Positions 8,890 to 63,955 of a stretch of DNA of 64,000 bases are shown here, piece by piece. The notes beneath the pieces were generated by a model that was given only the letters and a program-made list of their open reading frames with translations, did not search any database and was not told where the DNA came from. Position numbers and translations under genes: made by a program. How positions within the stretch are numbered: position 1 is the stretch's first letter; each line of letters begins with the position of its first letter. Source of the stretch: Trichosphaerium sp. ATCC 40318 (taxonomy: Eukaryota; Protista; Tubulinea); contig JALMLS010000377.1 in the NCBI GenBank assembly GCA_038496445.1, positions 261,926 to 325,925 on the forward strand, in the 5' to 3' direction.

Positions 8890-10528
8890 TCAATTTTTCT
8901 TCTTTTTCCTTGACATCTTTATTCTATTTGCAGCCCAACTTTCAAAAAAGAAAACCTCATAAAAGTTATCTTTAATGCCTCTATTATAGATGTTTACTAT
9001 CTTCTCTACTGGTCCAATAGAGTCTAAACGCTTGTATATAAGTGATATCCATTTATACGATAAGTAATCCTGTTCATCTTCATCAAGAGGTTCCTTAAAA
9101 GTAAGGAGTTGTGGAATAATATCGGTCTTCAAATCATTCCATTTAAATGTCTCGTATGTTGTTACACCATACCAAATCAAAGATACATGGAATAACGCGA
9201 ACGCGAATAGGACAACAGATACAATAGATGTGAATAAAGCAAGCGCAAAAACCCCACTAAAGTTCACAAGTAAGACCTAAATAAGACATCAATAATAATT
9301 CCGTTGTTTAGTTTTTGAAATGGTTCTGAGGTCGTACTTGTAGTAATTGTAAAAGTGACATTGTCACAAGTTCGCCCTAAATATATTTAGCAAAAAACAA
9401 TACTGAACAGGGCACAAGTATACAGTACACGTGGTAAAAATTCACGTGATGAAGAGGGGTAAAAAAAAAAGCAAGTAAAAATTTTTGGTTAATAAACGTA
9501 CAGCTTTGTTTGTGTAAGTGAGATCCCACAATCCATGACGTTCGATAACGCCCATAAGTACAGCAATACCAACATAACCACAGTATAAACATAATGCAGC
9601 TGTACTAAACAAGAACAGCAAGAAACTATACAAGTTACGTGCACCAACAGTAGTGTTTACCCAAGGGCAAAAATGATCAAATCTAGCAACGTATTTCTTA
9701 CTAATACCACAATATTTTGCGCGAGGCAACCTTTCAGAAAAAAACACGTGTTAGCAATCACGTGGTTTACCAAAAAAGGAAACAAATTGAGAAAAGTTTT
9801 GTCGTACCTTTTCAGGCCTGTTCTGGATTCTACACGGCCAGGAAAGTATAGTAAATGGTCGTAATCATAAAGTTTGGCGTAATAACCAAAGTTTTGCTTT
9901 GTTATCTCCCCAGGGTCGGAAATCGTTACGTAGTAATGCCACAGTAATACACCACCTACAAAGAAGTGTGGTATGTACCTATAGTGGTGATTAACGCTTT
10001 GTGAAGCCTTCAAAACGAAAAACAAAAACAATCAGAAAAAAAAAAGTGTAGCGTACAAATTGATTGCGGGAAGATAAGGTCCAGGTATGTGTGGCCAGCA
10101 TTTTAGCATAAATATTATGTAACCACCAATAATAAGCGAGTAATAAAATATCTATGGTTTTTTAGCTGTTAACGCTTGTTAAAAGTATGTTGTGGCGTAC
10201 CATCATGAAGGGGTTACGCTCTGTGCAAACGTATTCGCATATTGATGTGCATTTTGTATGACACGTCTTACCGCATACTGCCAACGTTAAATCGCTAGTT
10301 TTCGCGTAAGGTTAACGGTAAATGGATTTATTTAACGTTACCTGAGCCAAATCCATAGTTTTTTAGTTATTATGTTGTGTAACCATCCTAGGATAACGTT
10401 AAAACCATAGAAACTGGTAATGAGTGCTAACCAATTGGACCGTTTTTGTGCGACTTTGTTTCTCCAAATATTAACGTATAGATCAATAGAACGACGCAAG
10501 TTATATAAATTATCGTCGGGATAAGCAT
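8890..10528 (-). CDS. DHHC palmitoyltransferase (Swf1/ZDHHC4-like)
   Basis: PRAKYC..VARFDHFCPWVNTTVGARN (DHFC variant of DHHC), SDPGEIT, TTYE motif, NIYNRG and several TM helices. N-terminus MLIPTIIYITCVVLLIYTLIFG. Confidence 0.9.
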
Positions 10529-10692
10529 CCTTTATCAAGTGATTGAGCTAGGATAATTCTAAGAGGCATTACTTATTCGTTCTCAATCAAGACTTAAACA
10601 ACTGTTAGAATGCAGCTACATTTTCAGGTTTTTAAAGGGCATTGCAAGGACTCAATTAGTTGCAACTGCAATACAAATCTTTATTCATTTTG

Positions 10693-12120
10693 TCACAAAC
10701 CATGCGGCTTATGGGTGGCAACAGTCACGAGTAGGAGCCAGACAATAGTGAAGACAATCACGCAAAATACTAGTGGAGTTGGTATTACTTTATCATTCTT
10801 TTTTATCCGACAAACAAAGTATCGAGTTCCATCCCAACAGTCTTGATGAGTAATCCACACCTTGCCATACAGAAAAGTTCGTTCTAAATGATTTTCTTTA
10901 GTACATTCTTCAAAAGGAATAGCACGTGTATATTCGTCGCCTTTTCTAGGACATAATGAATAGTATTTTTGAAAAATCTTAAAGGCAACCTCCTTGTTAC
11001 CTAATATGTTGTTCAGTCCTTGATGTCTAAAAAAAGTAATTATGTACCTACTAACCTCTCTAAGACTTCATCATATCCGTCTTCATATCGTTTATATATT
11101 TGTACTGGAGGAACGTATACTGGTTCCTGAACAAAAGTTCTTGGTGGGTAGTTTTTACCGAGGATGGGAAAGCTGATTTAATAAGTCGTTTAAGTCTTTT
11201 TATATCTTTAGAGTTGTAACGTTTCATGATGTTATTAAAAGGGTTCCCTATGTCTAAAACAAGTGGCCTGTATCACGTTAACTTTGACGTTTCTATCTGA
11301 CATTGTTGTACCTTTGTTGTGCTGTGGTACTATCAATGAAGTGTTGGTAGTTCGGTTCTTTGTTTAAAATGAAAACGAGTTCATCAGGATTAGACAGTTC
11401 TCTAAGCACATGACGTGCTAGTTGCTTTAGGTTTGTATCATTGTATTTTATTGCAACTCCAATGGAAAGCAATTCAATGAGGTATGACTTTGGATAACCG
11501 ATAATATGTCTCGCCACCCGTTGTGCTTTAATTGTTCTGATAAACTTTTGTGCTACATGCATGTCTTTCAGTATCTCCCTGACAGATGTGAAGAGTAGAA
11601 GGAGCGCCTCCTTTTCGATTTGTACTGAATTGTCTTCCAAACCTTAACCGCGAAAGGCAATACCTATTATTGTTAAAACGAGCGCCTTTTTTTTTTCGTG
11701 TTATCACGTGCCTGGAAGCGCCGCTGTCGGTAATAAATCAATTCTAACGTTTTCCCCGTTGCACTTTCCTTCAAGTATTACAGAGTACGGTGTTACTGCC
11801 GTAACTTCAACACTAACCTGGAATACGTGATGATACGTTGTATATCTTCATAACGTGTTTATTTATTTCGTCCTCTGAGAGATTTTCAGAGGGAAATTGA
11901 TGAAAGTACCTAGTAGGTGTTTAATAAAGAACAACCAAACCTGGTTTAGGTTCGTACAATACAAAATCATAATCTGATGTGGGTATATCTGTTTTCTTGC
12001 CTCTTGAGCCCGCCTTTGGTGGATTTAAAAACTATCAGACCTGTTGATTACTCTTACCTTGATTACAGTTGCTTTAAGCTCTTTCGCCAAGTAGAATACT
12101 ACAGATTGTACCAACGACAT
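10693..12120 (-). CDS. 2'-5' oligoadenylate synthetase (OAS)/CD-NTase-like nucleotidyltransferase with C-terminal TM helix
   Basis: Spliced exons read AGSRGKKTDIPTSDYDFVL, VRIDLLP, FIRTIK, YPKSYLIELLSI, RHVLRELSN and RPLVLDIGNPFNN, collinear with OAS motifs. C-terminus PLVFCVIVFTIVWLLLVTVAT, stop TGA at 10693-10695. The N-terminus may extend to about 12350, and one junction near 11800-11855 is ambiguous. Confidence 0.8.
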
Positions 12121-12680
12121 GTGTCTGCGTCTTAACACCTCTTTAAAAATATCTTGCGAAGAAATACTAAGCAAAACTTGTACACCAGGGGTCAATCCAT
12201 TGCATAGGCTTGCGATGAGCTAACATAGCTCTATCCACAAAATTGAACAATCTACCATTAATAAACGGTGTTCCCTACATGATTTAGGAGGATAGTTTTG
12301 AGCCTCATCGAGCCAATATCAACACTAAAACAATAGACAATGTGGTCATAAATTTCACTTTGCAACTTGCATCTAAGAAAGTGTGTGCTGTTCAGTGGTT
12401 TAATACACGAAATGACTCGTGTTTAAAAACTTATCAACTTGCGAAACATGTATTCTAAGAATAGCAAAGGATAACTGTGTAACACAGGACATGTGCTACC
12501 GCTAGAAACTTGCGTTTTTAGTGGAGTAGAGCACTCATAAGGTGTTTACGCATCGACTAGGGCCTACAGCAGATAGGGTGTTTAAGAAATGTGCACAACA
12601 CTTAGCCAATATATTACTTAAGTGCAAAAATTCAAACCAACGAGTTTGTTGACACGTTGGAACAATTCTTGGTACTGCTT

Positions 12681-14557
12681 ATGCGAACCTCACAAATTAA
12701 ACTAGCCGGTGCGTAGCAGCAATTGATATAACCTTTCTCGTATTTTTAGTGGCTAACTTTTATTCTTTAGCTCGCTCGGTATCACGTGGTCTGCTGACAT
12801 TACCAAACGATATTCAACTTTACATATGCTCGCTCGATAAAGAAGTTTATATAAAATATCACCTACTGTCTGCTGCAGCTGCTAAAAACACTCACTTTAC
12901 GAATGATTTTAGAAAAAAGGGTACCTGGAAGCAGTGGTATTCAACAGGAGAGTTAAAGGCCATGATTCAACTACCTGTTGGCGAGGTAAAACATTGGCAT
13001 AAAAACGGACAACTTCAGGCACATTGCTACCATAAAAACGGAAAGACACATGGAAAGGCATTGCAGTGGTATGAGAACGGGCAGCTGCAGCATCAATCAT
13101 TCTATTTACAAGGCAAACTTCATGGTGAGAGAACGCAATGGCACTCGAATGGGCAGATTGCTGAACAATGCTTCTTTGAAAATGGAGAAGGGACAGGAAA
13201 GCATCAAGAGTGGTACGAAAACGGACAGACGGCAGTACAAGGAATGCTGAAAAACGACAAGTACGAAGGAATACTCCAAAAGTGGTATGAAAATGGTAAT
13301 ATGAAAGCATATACAAGCGTCACAGATGGAATAAAAGAAGGTGAAGTGAAAGAGTGGTATGAAAATGGCAAACTAAAGATACACCACTTTCGTCAATGCA
13401 AAAAAGTGGCGAGGTTTAGGAAAGAATATTTTGAGAATGGAAACCTTAAATCTTGTTTGTTCTTGGAAGATAGCACAGATGACTTGTATAACCAAGAAAT
13501 GATCAAAGAAGGTAACATTAAAACTATCGATGGCAAACAATGTCTAAAAGAAACGCACTACCACGAAAATGGAACAAGAAAATTAGAAAAATTCTGTTGC
13601 AATGGTAAGCCTTACGGCACTGCAAAACAGTGGAATGAAGATGGCCAAATTACATCTTGTGTTGAGGTAAAGAATGGCATACCGTATGGTAAGAGTGTCA
13701 TTTACAAAGATGGGAATAAGATAATAAGTGCTATGTTCAAGAACGGAAAGAAGAATGGTAAATACAAGGAGTGGCATAAAAATACACAACTGTCGTTATG
13801 TGCACACTTTGTTGATAACGTCATGGAAGGACTAGTGGAAGAATGGTATGAAAATGGACAAATGAAACAGGTTTATACGATTCACAATGGCAAAAAAGAA
13901 GGAGAATGCAATTGCTGGTACAGTAATGGACAGTTATCATCTCAACGATTTTGGAAACACGGCTTAGAACATGGAGAATGTAGACAATGGTATGAAAATG
14001 GTAAATTACAAGTACGGGCTGTAGCAAAGAATGGTAAAACGGCAGGAAAGTATGAAGAGTTCTATGACAATGGACAATTACACAAGCGCTTCTATGAATG
14101 GGATGATAAAGTACAAGGCGAAGTAAAACGTTGGCACAGGAATGGACAGCTGCATTTACAGTCCTATGTAAAGGACAGTATTCCTCATGGAGAAGAAAAA
14201 GAATGGTACCCCAATGGACAAATGAAGCGATGTTTGACTCGTGTCAATGGAAAAGCCGAAGGTTTAGCTAGGATGTGGTATGAGTGTGGTCAAATTTACG
14301 TTAAGAACTTCTTCAAGGGAGGTAAGAAAGAAGGAGAGTACAAGGAATGGTACCAAAACGGGAATTTATGTACACAATGCTACTTTGTGAACTCGAAGTA
14401 TGAAGGAGAGTACAAAGAATGGTATGAGAATGGGCAAATGAAACTACAATGTATGACTAGAAATAACTTGGATAATGGTGAGTACAAAGTATGGTATCAA
14501 AATGGAAAACTAAAGCTACAATGCGTGAAGAAGAATGGCAAAAAAGTACTCCAATAA
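12681..14557 (+). CDS. MORN-variant (YwqK-like) repeat protein with an F-box-like N-terminus
   Basis: About 20 repeats of G-x-x-K-E-W-Y-E-N-G-Q-L. ATG at 12681 and a phase-1 intron at 12709-12770 (GCTAAC branch) join it to the long exon. LLTLPNDIQLYIC resembles an F-box start (weak). Confidence 0.85.
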
Positions 14558-56870: not shown

Positions 56871-59521
56871 TACCTGGTTGAGCCTGCCAGGAGTGATAAG
56901 CTTTCTCGAAGGATTAAGCCATGCAAGCTCAGCAAAGAGGTATCCTCGGAGCCGCAAACGGCTCCTTAAAACGGTCGTAACCCACCCGACAAGACTAATA
57001 ATGGTCACGTCATTTTGCACACAGGAACTTGTTTCCTAAACGCACTATAACCAAAACTCGTGGCCTCCCCCGCGGATAACCGGGATTAAAGGAAACCTGC
57101 GGCTAATACGTAATGCGCCTAGCGCTGCCGATGGGCCCCTCTGCTGCAAGGACCCATCGGTCGCATCCAACGCTCAGGAGCGGACGATCACCCGATCCCA
57201 TCTTGGTTCGCCAAGGGAAGCAGCCTCCCCTTAGGAAGCGGCGTCCGTACTCCGTCGGGAAGAGCGGCGTTGGGGCATGCGATGGAGTTATGAGGAGTTC
57301 TCTCTGACTAGACATGTTTCTAAAAAAAAAAGTTGAAGTTTACATAAGTGAAACTAGGTGAAAGAAAAATGAACATTGTTCAAATCTCGATCCTTCGCTG
57401 AATGTGCTTCTTCATAAAGATCATATCGATATAAAGTTGAGAGTTCTCCCCCTCCACGAGTCGGAAGGGCGGCCGACCTATCAGCCAGGCGGTAGGGTAA
57501 CGGCCTACCGCGGCAGTGACGGGTAACGGGGAACTAGGGTTCGGTTCCCGGAGAAGGGGCATTAGATACGGCCCCTGTACTTACGGGTAACAGCAGGCGC
57601 GTAACTTGGCCATTGATTGCAAATCGAGCCAGCGACTGAGTGTAACGAGGCCGGCATTTAAACCGGTCGTCGCAATGAGGGGCAACTGAATGTCGCCCTG
57701 AGAAACTATTGGAGGACAAGTTGGGTGCCAGCACCCGCGGTAACACCCACTCCGAAAGCTTATACTTTTGCTGTTGCTGTTAAAGCGCTCGCAGTCCAAA
57801 CAACGACACAGCTGAGAGGGACAAGGTTTAGATATAAGAATTTATTCTTTTGAACAAACCCCCCGACTCTTTTTCATCGCCCGACCAGGCATAAATGGCT
57901 TCGCTCAAACGCAAGGTCAGTTTAGGCTTCGGCCGCTATGCCACCCACCAGCATCCTGGAATTGGGCTTTAAAAAAACAAAAAACAACACTTTACCAAGT
58001 GCGACGCTCAAGTCTCATTTTAACTAAGTATGAACAATATCCTGATATGCAAGTCTGAGTGAAAACTCATGTTCTTCATTAAGGGAATAAAAACATTGTG
58101 AATTACAAAAAGTACTTTGAGGAAAAACTTGAGTTAGTCTTCACACTAATAAAGAACACACGATTACTAGGTGCGTACGGGGTAGAGAGTGTGGTATCAG
58201 CGAGGAGTGAAATCTTTTGACCTGATCCAAACTACCCGAAGCGAAGGCGCTCTGCAAGGGCGTGGCCGGTGATCTAGAACGATGGTGGAGGGAGCGAAGC
58301 GGATTAGAGACCCGTGTAGTCTCCACAGTAAACGATGCCGACTGAATGGGCGCCGGGCAAACCAAGGCTCGGGGCCCGTTCCCACGGGAAACCGAAGTAA
58401 TCGGGCCCAGGGGGGAAGTATGGTCGCAAGGCTGAAACTTAAAGGCATTGACGGAGCAACACCACCAGGCTCTGGAGGCTGCGGCTCAATTTGACTCAAC
58501 GCGCGACAACTTACCGGGATCGGACGCTCTAAGGGGACGAACAGACTGAAGGGTCTTTTCCGAGTTAGCTAACGGTGGTGCATGGTCGTTTTAGGCTCGT
58601 GGACTTATCTGTCAGGTTTATTCCGATAACGGGCGAGATCGCTACTGTCACATTGATTCCCCCGCCTCGTGCGGGACCCCTGTGCAGGACTGACGGCGAA
58701 AAGTCGTAAGAAGCGGCGGCTATAACAGATCCGGGATGCCCCCAGATATTCCGGGCCGCACGCGGCCTACACTGCTTAGTTCAACGGGTTCCTGGGCCGA
58801 ACAGGCATCCGGGCAAGCCCTGAAACCGCCAGAACACTTCTTCACGACAGCGAGTTAAACCTCAGATTTTATTATCTAAATACGACTACACTTAAACGCA
58901 CCTTCGGAAACTACCACCTTCATAACAAAAGTCTGTCCTGAACCTAATATAAAGAGTTAACCCCCTCGTCGAGGCTTTTTAGGAAGTTAAATTCCTTTAA
59001 TGTTAAGATGAGAAGCGCTGTTAGATGAAAACTTACATCTTTGGACTTGTTCCTTAGTGTAAACATTGAAAGAGCTGTGGATCGTTTCAAATTAACAAAC
59101 AAGGTTTCTTCTTCACTTAAATGCTTTGACTTGGAAGATTATATCTTTACCAGGCAAACTTTATTATGAAGCAAGTTTCTGCAATGTTCATAAAAAATAC
59201 ATGAAAGCGCACCGTGTGGTCGATTTGGATGTTAAGTGTGCTCAATGCTGCTTCTTCGAAAAGACACATGCGTGCTTAGGGACTGGTTGCTGTAACTGTA
59301 GCCACGAACGCGGAATGCCTCGTACAGGTGTGTCATCAACGCACCTGGAATCTGTCCCTGTTGCTTGTACACACCGCCCGTCGCATCGACCGATGTGGGT
59401 GCGAGTGAGACCAGGGGGGACGACCGGCTTGCCGGTTATCGAACCTGCTCGAACTTGCGCTCATAAAGGATGATGAAGTCGTAACAAGGTTTCAGTAGGT
59501 GAACCTGCTGAAGGATCAATA
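56871..59521 (+). rRNA. 18S rRNA gene, highly divergent, about 2.65 kb with inserts
   Basis: TACCTGGTTGAGCCTGCCAG start, GATTAAGCCATGCA, GTGCCAGCACCCGCGGTAA, TTGTACACACCGCCCGTC and AAGTCGTAACAAGGT..GGTGAACCTGC..GGATCA end. Confidence 0.97.
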
Positions 59522-59757
59522 CTATTGGTATTAAACCCTTAGAAGCAATTAAACCAACTTTTAACCAAGTTTAAAAGAAAAAATTGGAGTATCAGCTCTG
59601 GTTTGGTAAATCTAATCTTACCTCGGTAAGTGAAGATGCAATCATCCTCTGCTGTGGTGATATCTTGCATATCTGCCAGCTCCACAACCGCCATTTTGGC
59701 AAACCAAAACACAGTCGTGGCACGACTATAAAGAACGTCAAGATTTTCGAAAGAAAC
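59522..59757 (+). other. ITS1
   Basis: AT-richer spacer between the 18S end and the 5.8S. Ends approximate. Confidence 0.75.
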
Positions 59758-59924
59758 CAAACCTTGTCGGTGAACGGTTAGGCACCTCCCCCGAAGAAGG
59801 CCATGGATCACTATGAAACCAGCCACCGGAATCGCTCTCATCTGAAGGTGGCATTGCCGAATGCCTCAGGCCGCGTTCTGTATTCTCACGAATCACAGGC
59901 AAAGGAGCGTGACTCAGCGACGCC
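59758..59924 (+). rRNA. 5.8S rRNA, very divergent
   Basis: Position in the unit. GGCACCTCCC pairs with LSU GGGAGGTGGCC (about 60451-60461), and the 3' GTGACTCAGCGACGC pairs with the LSU 5' GCGTCCTGAGTTAC. Confidence 0.8.
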
Positions 59925-60126
59925 AGCAAAACAAACACTAAATTTATTTGGTGCTGCGTATGGTGTACACACTTAATCTTCTAAAAAAAGAAAGTGGTTG
60001 CCACAACTAATTAATAAATTGCCGGAAGTGATGTTCCTCCAGAACTCATGCCTAGCTTACTTAAGCGAAGCTTTAGAGCGAAGGTTGGTTTACATACTGA
60101 ACTGAAAGCATTAAAAAAAACACAAC
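59925..60126 (+). other. ITS2
   Basis: AT-rich spacer enclosed by the 5.8S/28S proximal stem. Confidence 0.75.
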
Positions 60127-62744
60127 TTGCGTCCTGAGTTACACTTGGCGACCTGCCTAAGTTAAGCATATCATTGGGGCAGAGGAAAGGAAACCAAAAG
60201 GGACTCCCTGAGTAGCGGCGAGCGAAAGGGGACAAGCTCAAGCCTGAATCCGAGCCTAGCATCGGAGTTGTGGGCTAAGGCGTGGTGGCTCTTCCAGACG
60301 TTGACGGGAATTACGCACGAGTCGTAGCCGTAGAGGGTGCGAGCCCCGTACGCTGTCAACCGAGGAAATAGAGTCCCATCGTCCAGGAGTAGTATGGTTT
60401 GGCCGTGCCATACGAAGTTACCGGGAGGTTACCCGGCAAGGCTAAGTATCGGGAGGTGGCCGATAGCGCACCAGTACCGTGAGGGAAGACTGAAACAGCA
60501 CTCCTCGATAGAGGGTTAAAAGACCCGAAGCCGGCAAGGGTACAAATGGCACGGAGTACGTAGGTGCCCTGCACCTAATCTGCACATGGCAGACGCTCTT
60601 GTAGCGAGGGAAAAGCGACCGGGGCCTTGTGCCCTGGAAGATTATAATGAAACAAAACGTCGAGGGGAAGGTAACATAGAAGTGACTAACACAAAAAAGT
60701 CATACTGGCTAACTGTGCTGTCCACACCATCCTACAAGCTGAAAAGCATAAAAACGTGGGTTTGGTTGAAAGGACATCAAAAAGCACTTTTAAACCTTTA
60801 AATGGCGTTGGTTCACTGAAATTACTGAAACCTCCGAATGTACGTCTTCTTCCGAAAGGAACGAAGTTCGTCATTCATCGTCCACAACCTCAATGAGGCT
60901 CTATGCCCTTATTGGGCCATGGCCTCCGTGTATCCCGTCTTGAAACACGGATCAAGGAGTTCGCCGAGCGTGCGAGGGTGAGAGATCAAACCTCCAACCC
61001 GCACAGAAATGAAGCCAAGGATAAGCTCCTAGGCCGTCAAGTTCTTTATATAAAAACAAACGTATTGCAGTCACATGTATAAGTTTGCAAAGATCGACAT
61101 AAAAAACCGACTATGCTATTATCATGTTTTTGTTACGCAAGTAATTAAAAACACGTCACACCAAAGTAGATACACTTTGCCATCTCCGGCGTTGTTCTCT
61201 TGGCAGGCGATAGTACGTTGGGCGATACCCGAAAGGTAGCGATCTATACCCGAAAAGGGGGAAGGCGGGAGAAATCCCGCTGGACGCCCGTAGCGTTGCT
61301 GACGTGCAAATCGCTCGCCGGACATTGGGTATAGGGGCGAGAGACCAAACGAGCTGCCAACGTAGCTGGTACCGTTCGAAGTATCCCTAAGGATAGAGGG
61401 GGTCCGTGACGCCGGTCTCGTCTCGTAGAGCCACTGGAAAGAGGTATCGGAGGCCAAAGTTGCCATCGACCTATTATCAAACACATAAGAGGCGACCGAC
61501 TACAGGCCGAATGGCTGTAGTCACCGAGACGGTGGACCCCTATTGGGCCGGTCTTGATAAGCAGGACTGACGAGACGGTTTTAAACGCGAGCAGCAGCAA
61601 AGGCGCCCGAATAGGCAGTAACCAAGACAACGAAGGCGGTGTTCCAGTTTAGACAGCTGGAAGGTGGACATGGAAGTCGTCATCCTCTAAGGAGTGAGTA
61701 ACTTCTCACCAGCCGAATTGGGACGCGCCGAAAATGGATGGCGCTAAACTGCCTTAGCCGCCGCTGCGCGATCGCCCCGGCTCGGCCCAGGGTGCGGTAG
61801 GACGGCGTGCTGGTGGCGTAGAAGGGGGGCGGTGGCGTCCACCCGGAGCCACCAGCAGTGATGATCTTGGTGGTAGTAGCAATTGGAGCCTGGTGAAACA
61901 GTGTTTATCACAGCCAGGTCGCCCAAGTGGGGAAGGGTTTCGCGGTGATGGCATTCAGCTGCGAGTTAGCCGGTCCTAAGCCAGCTCCTAATAGAGTATA
62001 CTGTTTGATGCTGGCAGACGACACCTTGTTCGGATGAACTTTACTGTTTTCTGAAGACTGGTGGAAGTCTGCGATGCTTTCAACTCGGCGAAAGGCAACC
62101 TGGTGAGTAATCCAGGGCATGGGTAAGGAGGATGCATTTGCTTTAGAAGTGGCAACACTGAGAGAGAGAGCGCACGCGAGCAACCACACTTCTGCGGGGC
62201 CTTCTCCCGCGCCTAAGCTATTCGAGGGAAACTCCCCGGAGCCACGTAAAGCGGCGAAGGGAAAGAGTCGAGGGTAGCTAATGGGAAAGCACTTTTGCTT
62301 TCTAGGGGTGTTGGTGAGCTCGTTCTCACGAGGCTGCTCCTCTCCGAAGCCGACACTTTCGGGTGTTCAGTGTCCTCCAGGCTCATACCGTACCGAAAAC
62401 CGCATCAGGTCCCCTAGGTTAGTCACCTCTGGCGCTGCACGGTGTAAACGGCGTAAGGGAAGTCGGCATACGCGGCCCGTAACTTCGGGAAAAGGGCTGG
62501 CTCTGCTGACCGGGACCCGGGACGACGTGCGTCTGCGCTACTTCAGTGTAGCCCCTTCGGGAACGGCGCACAGTCCCTGCAAAGAGGTCCACAAGCGGAT
62601 CATGGCGGAACTCTCAGAAGCTTAGAGAACCCAACTGTTTACTTAAAACTTAGCCCTTTGATACCTCCTCTGAGGTCTGACAAAGGGTGACTCCTGCCCA
62701 GTGCTTTGAAAGTTGCGGTGCTTAATTTCACCCAAGCACGGGTT

Positions 62745-62794
<50 letters not shown>

Positions 62795-63511
62795 GTAACT
62801 AATGACGCGCATGAATGGATGAATGAGGTTCTCGCTGTCCCTACGCCGACCGTGGCGAAACCACAGAGTCGCGAACGGGCGACTTTTCTACCAGCGGGGA
62901 AAGAAGACCCTGTTGAGTTTGACTCTCACCACGCTTAGGGGCTTGGCACTGGAGGTATAGGGTAGGAAGTAGTTTTTTACGAAAGGTGTAACACTTCTAC
63001 TCCGGAGGTCGGGCCCCAGACGCATTCAAAACGGGCGAAAGCGCCTGCCTCTTCGGAGGACGTGGCGCTGCTCGAACCATACAAGTCGGTCTTTAGGTTG
63101 AGGCGGGCCCAATCGAAAGTGCGGATTACCTTCCGATTCCGAGACTTTGACAAGCATTAAGGCGGACAGCGCGTGGCCGGGAGTTTGGCTGGGGCGGCAC
63201 ATCCGCTATAGGGTAACACGGATGACCTAAGGGGAGCTCAGTGGGGACAGAAACCCCACGTAGAGGCCAAGGCTAAAAGCCCCCTTGAGCAAGAGTGGAG
63301 CCATCGCTCTTGCACCCTAACGGGAGGCCTAGAGATCCCTCGTGACTAGTCATGTAACCTGACACTGGGGTGACAGAAAAATTACCATAGGGATAACTGG
63401 CTTGTGGTCGCCAAGCGCTCAGAGCGACGCGACTTTTTGATTCTTCGATGTCGGCTCTTCCTATCCAGGTGTAGCAGAATGCTCCAAGGGTTGGATTGTT
63501 CACCCACTTAC

Positions 63512-63555
<44 letters not shown>

Positions 63556-63955
63556 TTACCCTACTGGTGGGCCTATTTTATTAACATGCGCGTCGTCGGT
63601 AGCGATGCCTCAGTACGAGAGGAACGGGCATCGGTGGCCTCTAGTGTCCGCGGACGTCCGAGAGGGCGGTTCGCGAAGCCACGCCATTGGGAGTACGGCT
63701 GAAGGCCTCTAAAGTCGGAAACCCAGCCGCCAAGAGCCGCGCGGCGACATTGTCGTTGCTGCGCCTCCTCGAACGAAAGGCTTCGGCCCGCAAAGGTTCT
63801 ACACTATGGCACAAGTAGCACGTCTTAGCAAACGCCCGCAGGGGCCCCGTAAACCACGGGAACTCGAACAGGGTCTTAGGGCATTTACTGTTGTAAGCTA
63901 GGGAGTCGCTCAAGCCTTCGGGTGCGACGACCTGCTGAGGCAGAGGCCCGACTAA
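60127..63955 (+). rRNA. 28S rRNA gene, divergent, with expanded D regions
   Basis: TTAAGCATATCA, AGTACCGTGAGGGAA, CCCGTCTTGAAACACGGA, GTAACTATGACTCTCTTAAGGTAGCC, PTC GGGATAACTGG and TCGATGTCGGCTC, sarcin-ricin loop AGTACGAGAGGAAC. 3' end approximate. Confidence 0.97.

Follow-up and report, generated by a model that had tools for sequence, protein, structure and literature searches.

A transcribed and spliced OAS-branch CD-NTase gene in Trichosphaerium that is probably a recently inactivated pseudogene

The locus at 10688-12303 on the minus strand of contig JALMLS010000377.1 from Trichosphaerium sp. ATCC 40318 (positions are those of the window, the whole 64,000-nt stretch that was analysed) is best explained as a pseudogene: a member of the OAS branch of the CD-NTase superfamily that was inactivated recently and is still transcribed and correctly spliced. 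This reading is assigned a probability of roughly 0.8. The window copy can yield neither an active enzyme nor a membrane-tethered one. The evidence comes from RNA contigs that fix the exon structure, from an MMETSP-derived relative that supplies the reading frame, and from other expressed forms that differ from the window at the sites of the lesions.

Structure of the gene and its transcripts

The RNA evidence is drawn from Logan contigs, which are assemblies, rather than from raw reads. Contigs are designated here by their runs: X1 is one run with another organism label, and X2 to X5 are four runs from a single sample. The X2 contig is 1110 nt long, shows zero or one differences from the window and no gaps over 10963-12303, and is spliced at five places. 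The RNA contigs divide the gene into six exons, separated by five introns that measure 44-48 nt and are GT-AG in four cases and GC-AG in one:

12058-12303, minus strand: exon 1, 5' leader, then ATG at 12120 (MSLVQSVVFYLAKELKATVIK); X2 covers 12057-12303
12014-12057, minus strand: intron 1, 44 nt, GT-AG; joint seen in X2
11958-12013, minus strand: exon 2, Pol-beta NTase motif AGSRGKKTDIPTSDYDFV, with G-S at 12010-12005 and DxD at 11974-11966
11910-11957, minus strand: intron 2, 48 nt, GT-AG; joint seen in X2
11712-11909, minus strand: exon 3, YFHQ...SSRIPG leading to TAG at 11815-11813, then in the next frame VSVEV...RIDLLPTAALP, with the third catalytic Asp at 11742-11740
11664-11711, minus strand: intron 3, 48 nt, GC-AG; joint seen in X2 and X3
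11312-11663, minus strand: exon 4, OAS C-lobe (FIRTIK, PKSYLIELLSI), with in-frame TAA at 11646-11644 and two deletion scars
11268-11311, minus strand: intron 4, 44 nt, GT-AG; joint seen in X1, X2, X3 and X4
11048-11267, minus strand: exon 5, end of the OAS core (RPLVLDIGNPFNN...) and linker, with one C lost at 11146-11148
11001-11047, minus strand: intron 5, 47 nt, GT-AG; joint seen in X2, X3 and X4
10688-11000, minus strand: exon 6, orphan Cys-containing region, helix at 10717-10773, TGA at 10695-10693; X3/X4 cover 10688-10997

At intron 3 the cut could be placed at any of four positions, of which only GC..AG gives a recognised splice type. The 183-nt 5' leader (12121-12303) contains several short upstream ORFs. 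The 3' UTR is very short, the transcripts ending about 5 nt past the TGA (10688-10695).

The original prediction had joined motifs across guessed introns of 29-70 nt, and the motifs themselves are present on the minus strand as listed: AGSRGKKTDIPTSDYD in exon 2 and RIDLLP in exon 3, which together supply GS, DxD and the third acidic residue, IRTIK and PKSYLIELLSI in exon 4, and RPLVLDIGNPFNN in exon 5. Translation of the window places them in three minus-strand frames, and the only ORF listed at the gene is indeed a 115-aa piece (11293-11640). The introns are a different matter, since the RNA contigs give five of 44, 48, 48, 44 and 47 nt, the third of them GC-AG. Either a tiny intron or a frameshift had been proposed at 11800-11855. 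Introns of 19-37 nt are ruled out there, as X2, X3 and X4 are unspliced across 11711-11851 and the real introns measure 44-48 nt; because these contigs run continuously through that interval, the break in it is a frameshift, and this half of the proposal stands.

The ancestral frame was traced with P0001, a complete 443-aa ORF from an MMETSP transcriptome. A conceptual window protein of 401 aa, written with an X at each of four breaks, was aligned pairwise to it and proved colinear with P0001 residues 1-272, start included. The N-terminus in exon 1 is colinear with the P0001 start, both halves of exon 3 match P0001 in pairwise comparison, and the exon 2 piece is 78% identical to it. Pairwise E-values for the window pieces against P0001 are 2e-13, 1e-6 and 9e-24.

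Lesions in the window allele

The spliced transcript of the window allele is not one reading frame, as the joining of exons into a single protein had supposed; it falls into three segments between which the frame changes, and contains a TAG and a TAA. Segment 1 runs from ATG 12120 (MSLV...AGSRGKKTDIPTSDYDFVLYFHQ...SSRIPG) to the TAG at 11815-11813, which is produced by a frameshift near 11816. Segment 2 reads VSVEV...RIDLLPTAALPGIAFRG to the TAA at 11646-11644, then GLEDNS...FIRTIK...PKSYLIELLSI...RPLVLDIGNPFNN..., and stops at a TAG at about 11062. Segment 3 comprises the last ~130 codons, from ...PRTFVQEP... through the hydrophobic helix to the TGA at 10695-10693. The frame change that separates segments 2 and 3 lies near 11146, where the loss of one C from the C-run at 11146-11148 puts the C-terminal region and the membrane helix out of frame.

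Exon 4 has suffered two deletions, of 11 nt at 11644/11645 and of 22 nt at 11578/11579, and contains the TAA at 11646-11644; the 66 nt between the scars are read outside the ancestral frame. Direct repeats, of 5 bp (TAACC) and 6 bp (CTGACA), flank the lost segments and can be read as scars of slippage or microhomology-mediated deletion.

Translation of the window allele from the first ATG yields at most a stub of 71 aa, without the third Asp and without any of the C-lobe. Initiation at an internal ATG may yet give a fragment that consists of the C-lobe only. Neither product can be catalytic, and in this allele the catalytic core and the membrane helix lie in different frames.

It might be argued that the gene is intact and functional in the organism, that the breaks are assembly errors, and that the window encodes a tail-anchored OAS-like enzyme. 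Two of the lesions do fall within short stretches of a single base (CCC at 11146-11148, and 11816-11818), and other contigs differ there by one base. However, the spliced X2 RNA agrees with the window at every base of all four lesion sites and carries both stops and both frameshifts; the presence of the lesions in an RNA contig shows that they did not arise in assembly. Losses of 11 nt and 22 nt, moreover, are not of the kind that homopolymer errors produce, and the form that differs from the window at these sites, described below, is itself broken. An intact gene hidden by misassembly is therefore improbable. An in-frame stop retained in transcripts had been named in the original prediction as the mark of a pseudogene, and X2, identical to the window, retains it: a two-lobe reading frame is absent from the window copy, with the TAG, the TAA and two frame changes all present in window-identical RNA.

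Other expressed forms

A second expressed form, represented by X3 and X4, is either a second allele or a very recent paralogue. It differs from the window by 0-4 substitutions per piece and has 11 additional nt after 11644, 22 additional nt after 11578, and one additional base each at 11816 and 11145; it has one base fewer at 11366 and a 178-nt gap at 11852-12029. When these differences are applied to the window, the restored stretch reads ...GYHWVKVWKTIQYKSKRRRSFYSSHLSVKLIQFVREIL..., which aligns residue for residue with ...YWPLVWKEIQQFSWRRKHVFSSHFAKKAVQFMRDAL... of P0001. The restored translation, KVWKTIQYKSKRRRSFYSSHLS, is 37% identical to P0001 over 139 aa (E 2e-26), whereas the window reading of the same bases, GLEDNSVQIEKEALLLLFTSV, gives no alignment with it. 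Because the two additional segments restore a stretch that matches P0001, it is the window allele that has lost 11 nt and 22 nt.

The same argument applies to the C-run. At 11145 X3/X4 have CCCC where the window has CCC, and the frame is restored into ...PRTFVQEP.... X1 differs from the window by -11 nt at this position. Both changes join the core in frame to the C-terminal region, so that the loss of one C falls to the window. The membrane helix is thus in frame in both X3/X4 and X1.

The X3/X4 form is broken as well, at different places. Its 178-nt gap removes all of exon 2, and with it GS and DxD, and one base has been lost from the A-run at 11366-11369, which yields VFI followed by a stop. 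The gap at 11852-12029 has non-canonical ends and 3 bp of microhomology. The frame stays open from the same ATG into the RIDLLP segment, giving a product without GS and DxD that may be an accident or a selected inactive isoform. It counts against the pseudogene reading that the window form is still transcribed and spliced, at depths similar to those of X3/X4.

The X1 fragments cover 10804-10960 and 11110-11554 and contain no break there. In the core frame X1 differs from the window at nine positions, six non-synonymous and three synonymous, which are too few to judge selection.

Family assignment

The gene is a predicted member of the OAS branch of the CD-NTase superfamily, as had been proposed from its motifs (GS, DxD and the third Asp). 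The separate exon translations gave no meaningful match in Pfam (including OAS1_C), PADLOC or PDB, and the assignment consequently runs through P0001. When the central exon was searched exhaustively with phmmer against 1.84 billion representative proteins, P0001 was the one match, at E 7.1e-5. A word-indexed search with P0001 returned only P0001, for which no contig is on record.

On Pfam OAS1_C, for which the gathering cut-off is 19.9, P0001 reaches 28.7 bits, and no other Pfam family is above threshold. Against the porcine and human OAS1 structures it gives E-values of 1.7e-4 to about 2e-4 over residues 13-255, an interval that spans GS, DxD, the third Asp and the C-lobe motifs; through it, AGSRGKKTDIPTSDYD and RIDLLP of the window align with GSSGKG..SDAD and FDVLP of OAS1. 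Two cyclase models match P0001 as well: that for oligonucleotide cyclases in PADLOC at 8.6e-11, and CBASS_cyclase_a of NCBIfam at 1.7e-12, where its 47.1 bits fall below the equivalog cut-off of 200. When window exon 4 was added to a profile of the P0001 C-lobe, the OAS2 match moved from 5e-4 to 9.5e-5 and the OAS1 match from 8.6e-3 to 2.1e-3. By Atlas features, the central exon alone falls with OAS1_C, DZF_C and CD_NTase_C clusters at 0.91. An AlphaFold2 model of P0001, computed with no alignment, had a mean pLDDT of 35.8.

Membership in another nucleotidyltransferase family (poly(A) polymerase, TUTase or CCA-adding-like) rather than in OAS/CD-NTase is more doubtful still than misassembly. 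P0001 does have weak, sub-threshold matches to MTPAP-like_central (E 0.0063), Polbeta and NTP_transf_2, families that have the same N-lobe fold. Against this, OAS1_C is the sole Pfam family above threshold, the only significant solved structures are OAS1 and OAS2, the CBASS cyclase models match the full core at 1e-11 to 1e-12, and the ten Atlas clusters nearest to P0001 are all OAS, DZF or CBASS. The OAS branch of the CD-NTase superfamily is the preferred assignment.

The C-terminal region and tail helix

Beyond the core the gene encodes ~130 residues in all, a variable linker followed by ~100 residues with four Cys. This region has an open frame of 145 codons that spans a correctly spliced intron; at this base composition the chance of such a frame is about 5e-5. 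For the C-terminal 101 aa, no homologue was found in Pfam, in the Atlas (best 0.48) or in an index of 5.8 billion proteins, and BLAST gave no match between the C-terminal region and the C-terminus of P0001. A Pfam match of the same 101 aa to Caveolin was at chance level only.

The tail helix, LVFCVIVFTIVWLLLVTVA at 10717-10773, has a mean Kyte-Doolittle hydropathy of 3.0 over 19 residues; no other segment exceeds 1.4. It is preceded by RIKKNDK and followed by seven residues before the stop. This layout is that of a predicted tail anchor in the ancestral gene. The extra C-terminal residues and hydrophobic helix of the original prediction thus belong to the ancestral frame; in the window allele the helix is cut off from the core.

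Genomic context

No second copy of the OAS-like gene was found in the window by tblastn. A scan of the large ORFs in the window gave matches only to MORN, DHHC, a tRNA synthetase fragment and Ssl1; no effector of the RNase L kind is among them. The genes on either side are:

about 8890-10540, minus strand: DHHC palmitoyltransferase gene, adjoining the OAS-like gene
12749-14557, plus strand: MORN-repeat gene, an intronless 602-aa ORF of nearly all MORN_2 repeats (WYENGQ...), Pfam 2.6e-65

The DHHC gene matches Pfam DHHC at 1.4e-19 over 9445-9747 (minus strand), and its catalytic motif is DHFC (RFDHFCPWVNTTVG) rather than DHHC. It is broken up by short introns, and the loose end of an X1 contig implies one of 44 nt at 10387-10430. 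The MORN gene and the OAS-like gene are divergently transcribed. Farther along, at 56871-63753, the window holds an rRNA operon that adjoins ordinary protein-coding genes. Its small-subunit rRNA is unusually long (2651 nt, versus 1831 positions in the model), and its 5.8S, at 59759-59922, scores 27.8 bits, below the Rfam gathering score of 42.

Inactivation and the ancestral protein

The least probable explanation is expression of the locus by recoding, that is, by programmed +1/-1 frameshifting with stop readthrough, or by a variant genetic code: both premature stops do come after GGT (GGT-TAG, GGT-TAA) and the first break amounts in formal terms to a +1 shift at a stop codon of the Euplotes type, but the 22 codons past the TAA are in the wrong frame relative to P0001, so that readthrough would give a scrambled segment, the third break requires a shift in the opposite direction, the forms differ by indels with deletion scars and not by conserved slippery sites, and neighbouring long ORFs, such as that of the 602-aa MORN protein with no internal stop, fit the standard code. 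A ciliate-type code is ruled out, these neighbouring ORFs being stop-free under the standard one.

If the locus is a recently inactivated pseudogene, its ancestral protein would have consisted of a Pol-beta-type core of ~270 aa (GS, DxD and the third Asp), a region of ~100 aa that contains Cys and is specific to the lineage, and a tail anchor that may have kept the enzyme at a membrane, on its cytosolic side. If it worked as OAS and the clade C CD-NTases do, the GS/DxD/D centre would have polymerised NTPs into 2'-5' oligoadenylate or a related nucleotide signal. Inactivation would have involved the frameshift near 11816, with its TAG, the microhomology-flanked deletions of 11 and 22 nt, with the TAA, and the loss of one nucleotide at 11146-11148.

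The working membrane-tethered signalling enzyme envisaged in the original prediction does not exist in the window copy, whose transcript keeps both stops and both frameshifts, and since this copy is dead it tells nothing direct about signalling. It is possible, if rather doubtful, that an intact orthologue or paralogue persists in the lineage, for example in the X1 organism, in which the covered parts are in frame. Such a gene would encode a tail-anchored OAS-superfamily synthase that produces a nucleotide signal at a protist membrane surface; it would have acquired membrane targeting separately from human OAS1 p46, which is prenylated, and the orphan Cys region might serve as a sensor or partner-binding module. 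Were an intact tail-anchored copy to be found, it would be a convenient case for the repeated evolution of membrane placement in OAS-type sensors.

The locus is informative in other ways. A sparsely sampled protist branch of the OAS/CD-NTase superfamily appears to include a form that carries an orphan domain and has a transmembrane anchor at its C-terminus. Turnover of the family is quick here, with two expressed forms broken at different places, as expected of fast-evolving immune gene families. Finally, the joining of motifs across guessed introns can overstate the intactness of a gene; in this instance RNA evidence altered the verdict.

Comparison with known systems

P0001 is the only relative found library-wide. 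The two proteins are colinear over the NTase core (P0001 residues 1-272) and 53% identical around the active site. The C-terminal 170 residues of P0001 are unrelated to the C-terminal region of the window gene; they end ...VANLLGYY and show no hydrophobic tail by eye.

The resemblance to vertebrate OAS1 and OAS2 (PDB 1px5, 4ig8, 4rwn, 9h1z) lies in the order of the motifs, GS, DxD and a third Asp in an xDLLP/xDVLP strand, and extends into the C-lobe, where the R..K helix (FIRTIK versus LIRLVK), P-x-x-Y-x-x-E-L-L and RP-(L/V)-(V/I)-LD-x-x-N/D-P are shared. The alignment of P0001 to OAS1 covers OAS1 residues 46-308. Sequence identity is low, with an E-value of about 1e-4 for P0001; the window protein is ~20 residues shorter before GS, and the window copy is broken. 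Human OAS1 p46 is targeted to membranes at its C-terminus by prenylation; the unrelated ~130-aa C-terminal region of the window gene has no CaaX box and ends in a predicted transmembrane tail anchor.

An OAS-like gene in a protist is to be expected. CD-NTases of the OAS type, with PF10421 as the defining domain, are reported from 8/12 eukaryotic supergroups by Culbertson and Levin 2023 (PMC10732462), who place them within the bacterial clade C CD-NTases. P0001, non-metazoan and with OAS1_C, fits this definition and scores better still on CBASS cyclase models. In text searches of that paper "transmembrane" occurs only with STING, no tail-anchored OAS architecture is described, and the word "pseudogene" is absent (PMC10732462). 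A full-text literature search for tail-anchored oligoadenylate synthetases gave nothing relevant beyond one pertinent match, MiD51. The combination of OAS core, orphan region and tail anchor is thus a layout for which no published example was found, and it is seen here only in decayed copies and partial contigs.

Kinship with the bacterial CBASS CD-NTases is at the superfamily level only; the window gene has spliceosomal introns and no CBASS operon context. MiD51 and MiD49, membrane-anchored NTase-fold proteins of the Mab21/cGLR superfamily (PMC3926961), offer a likeness in layout, an NTase fold held on an organelle membrane through a single helix. In these proteins, however, the anchor is N-terminal, the superfamily is Mab21, and the function is that of Drp1 receptors rather than immune synthases (PMC3926961).
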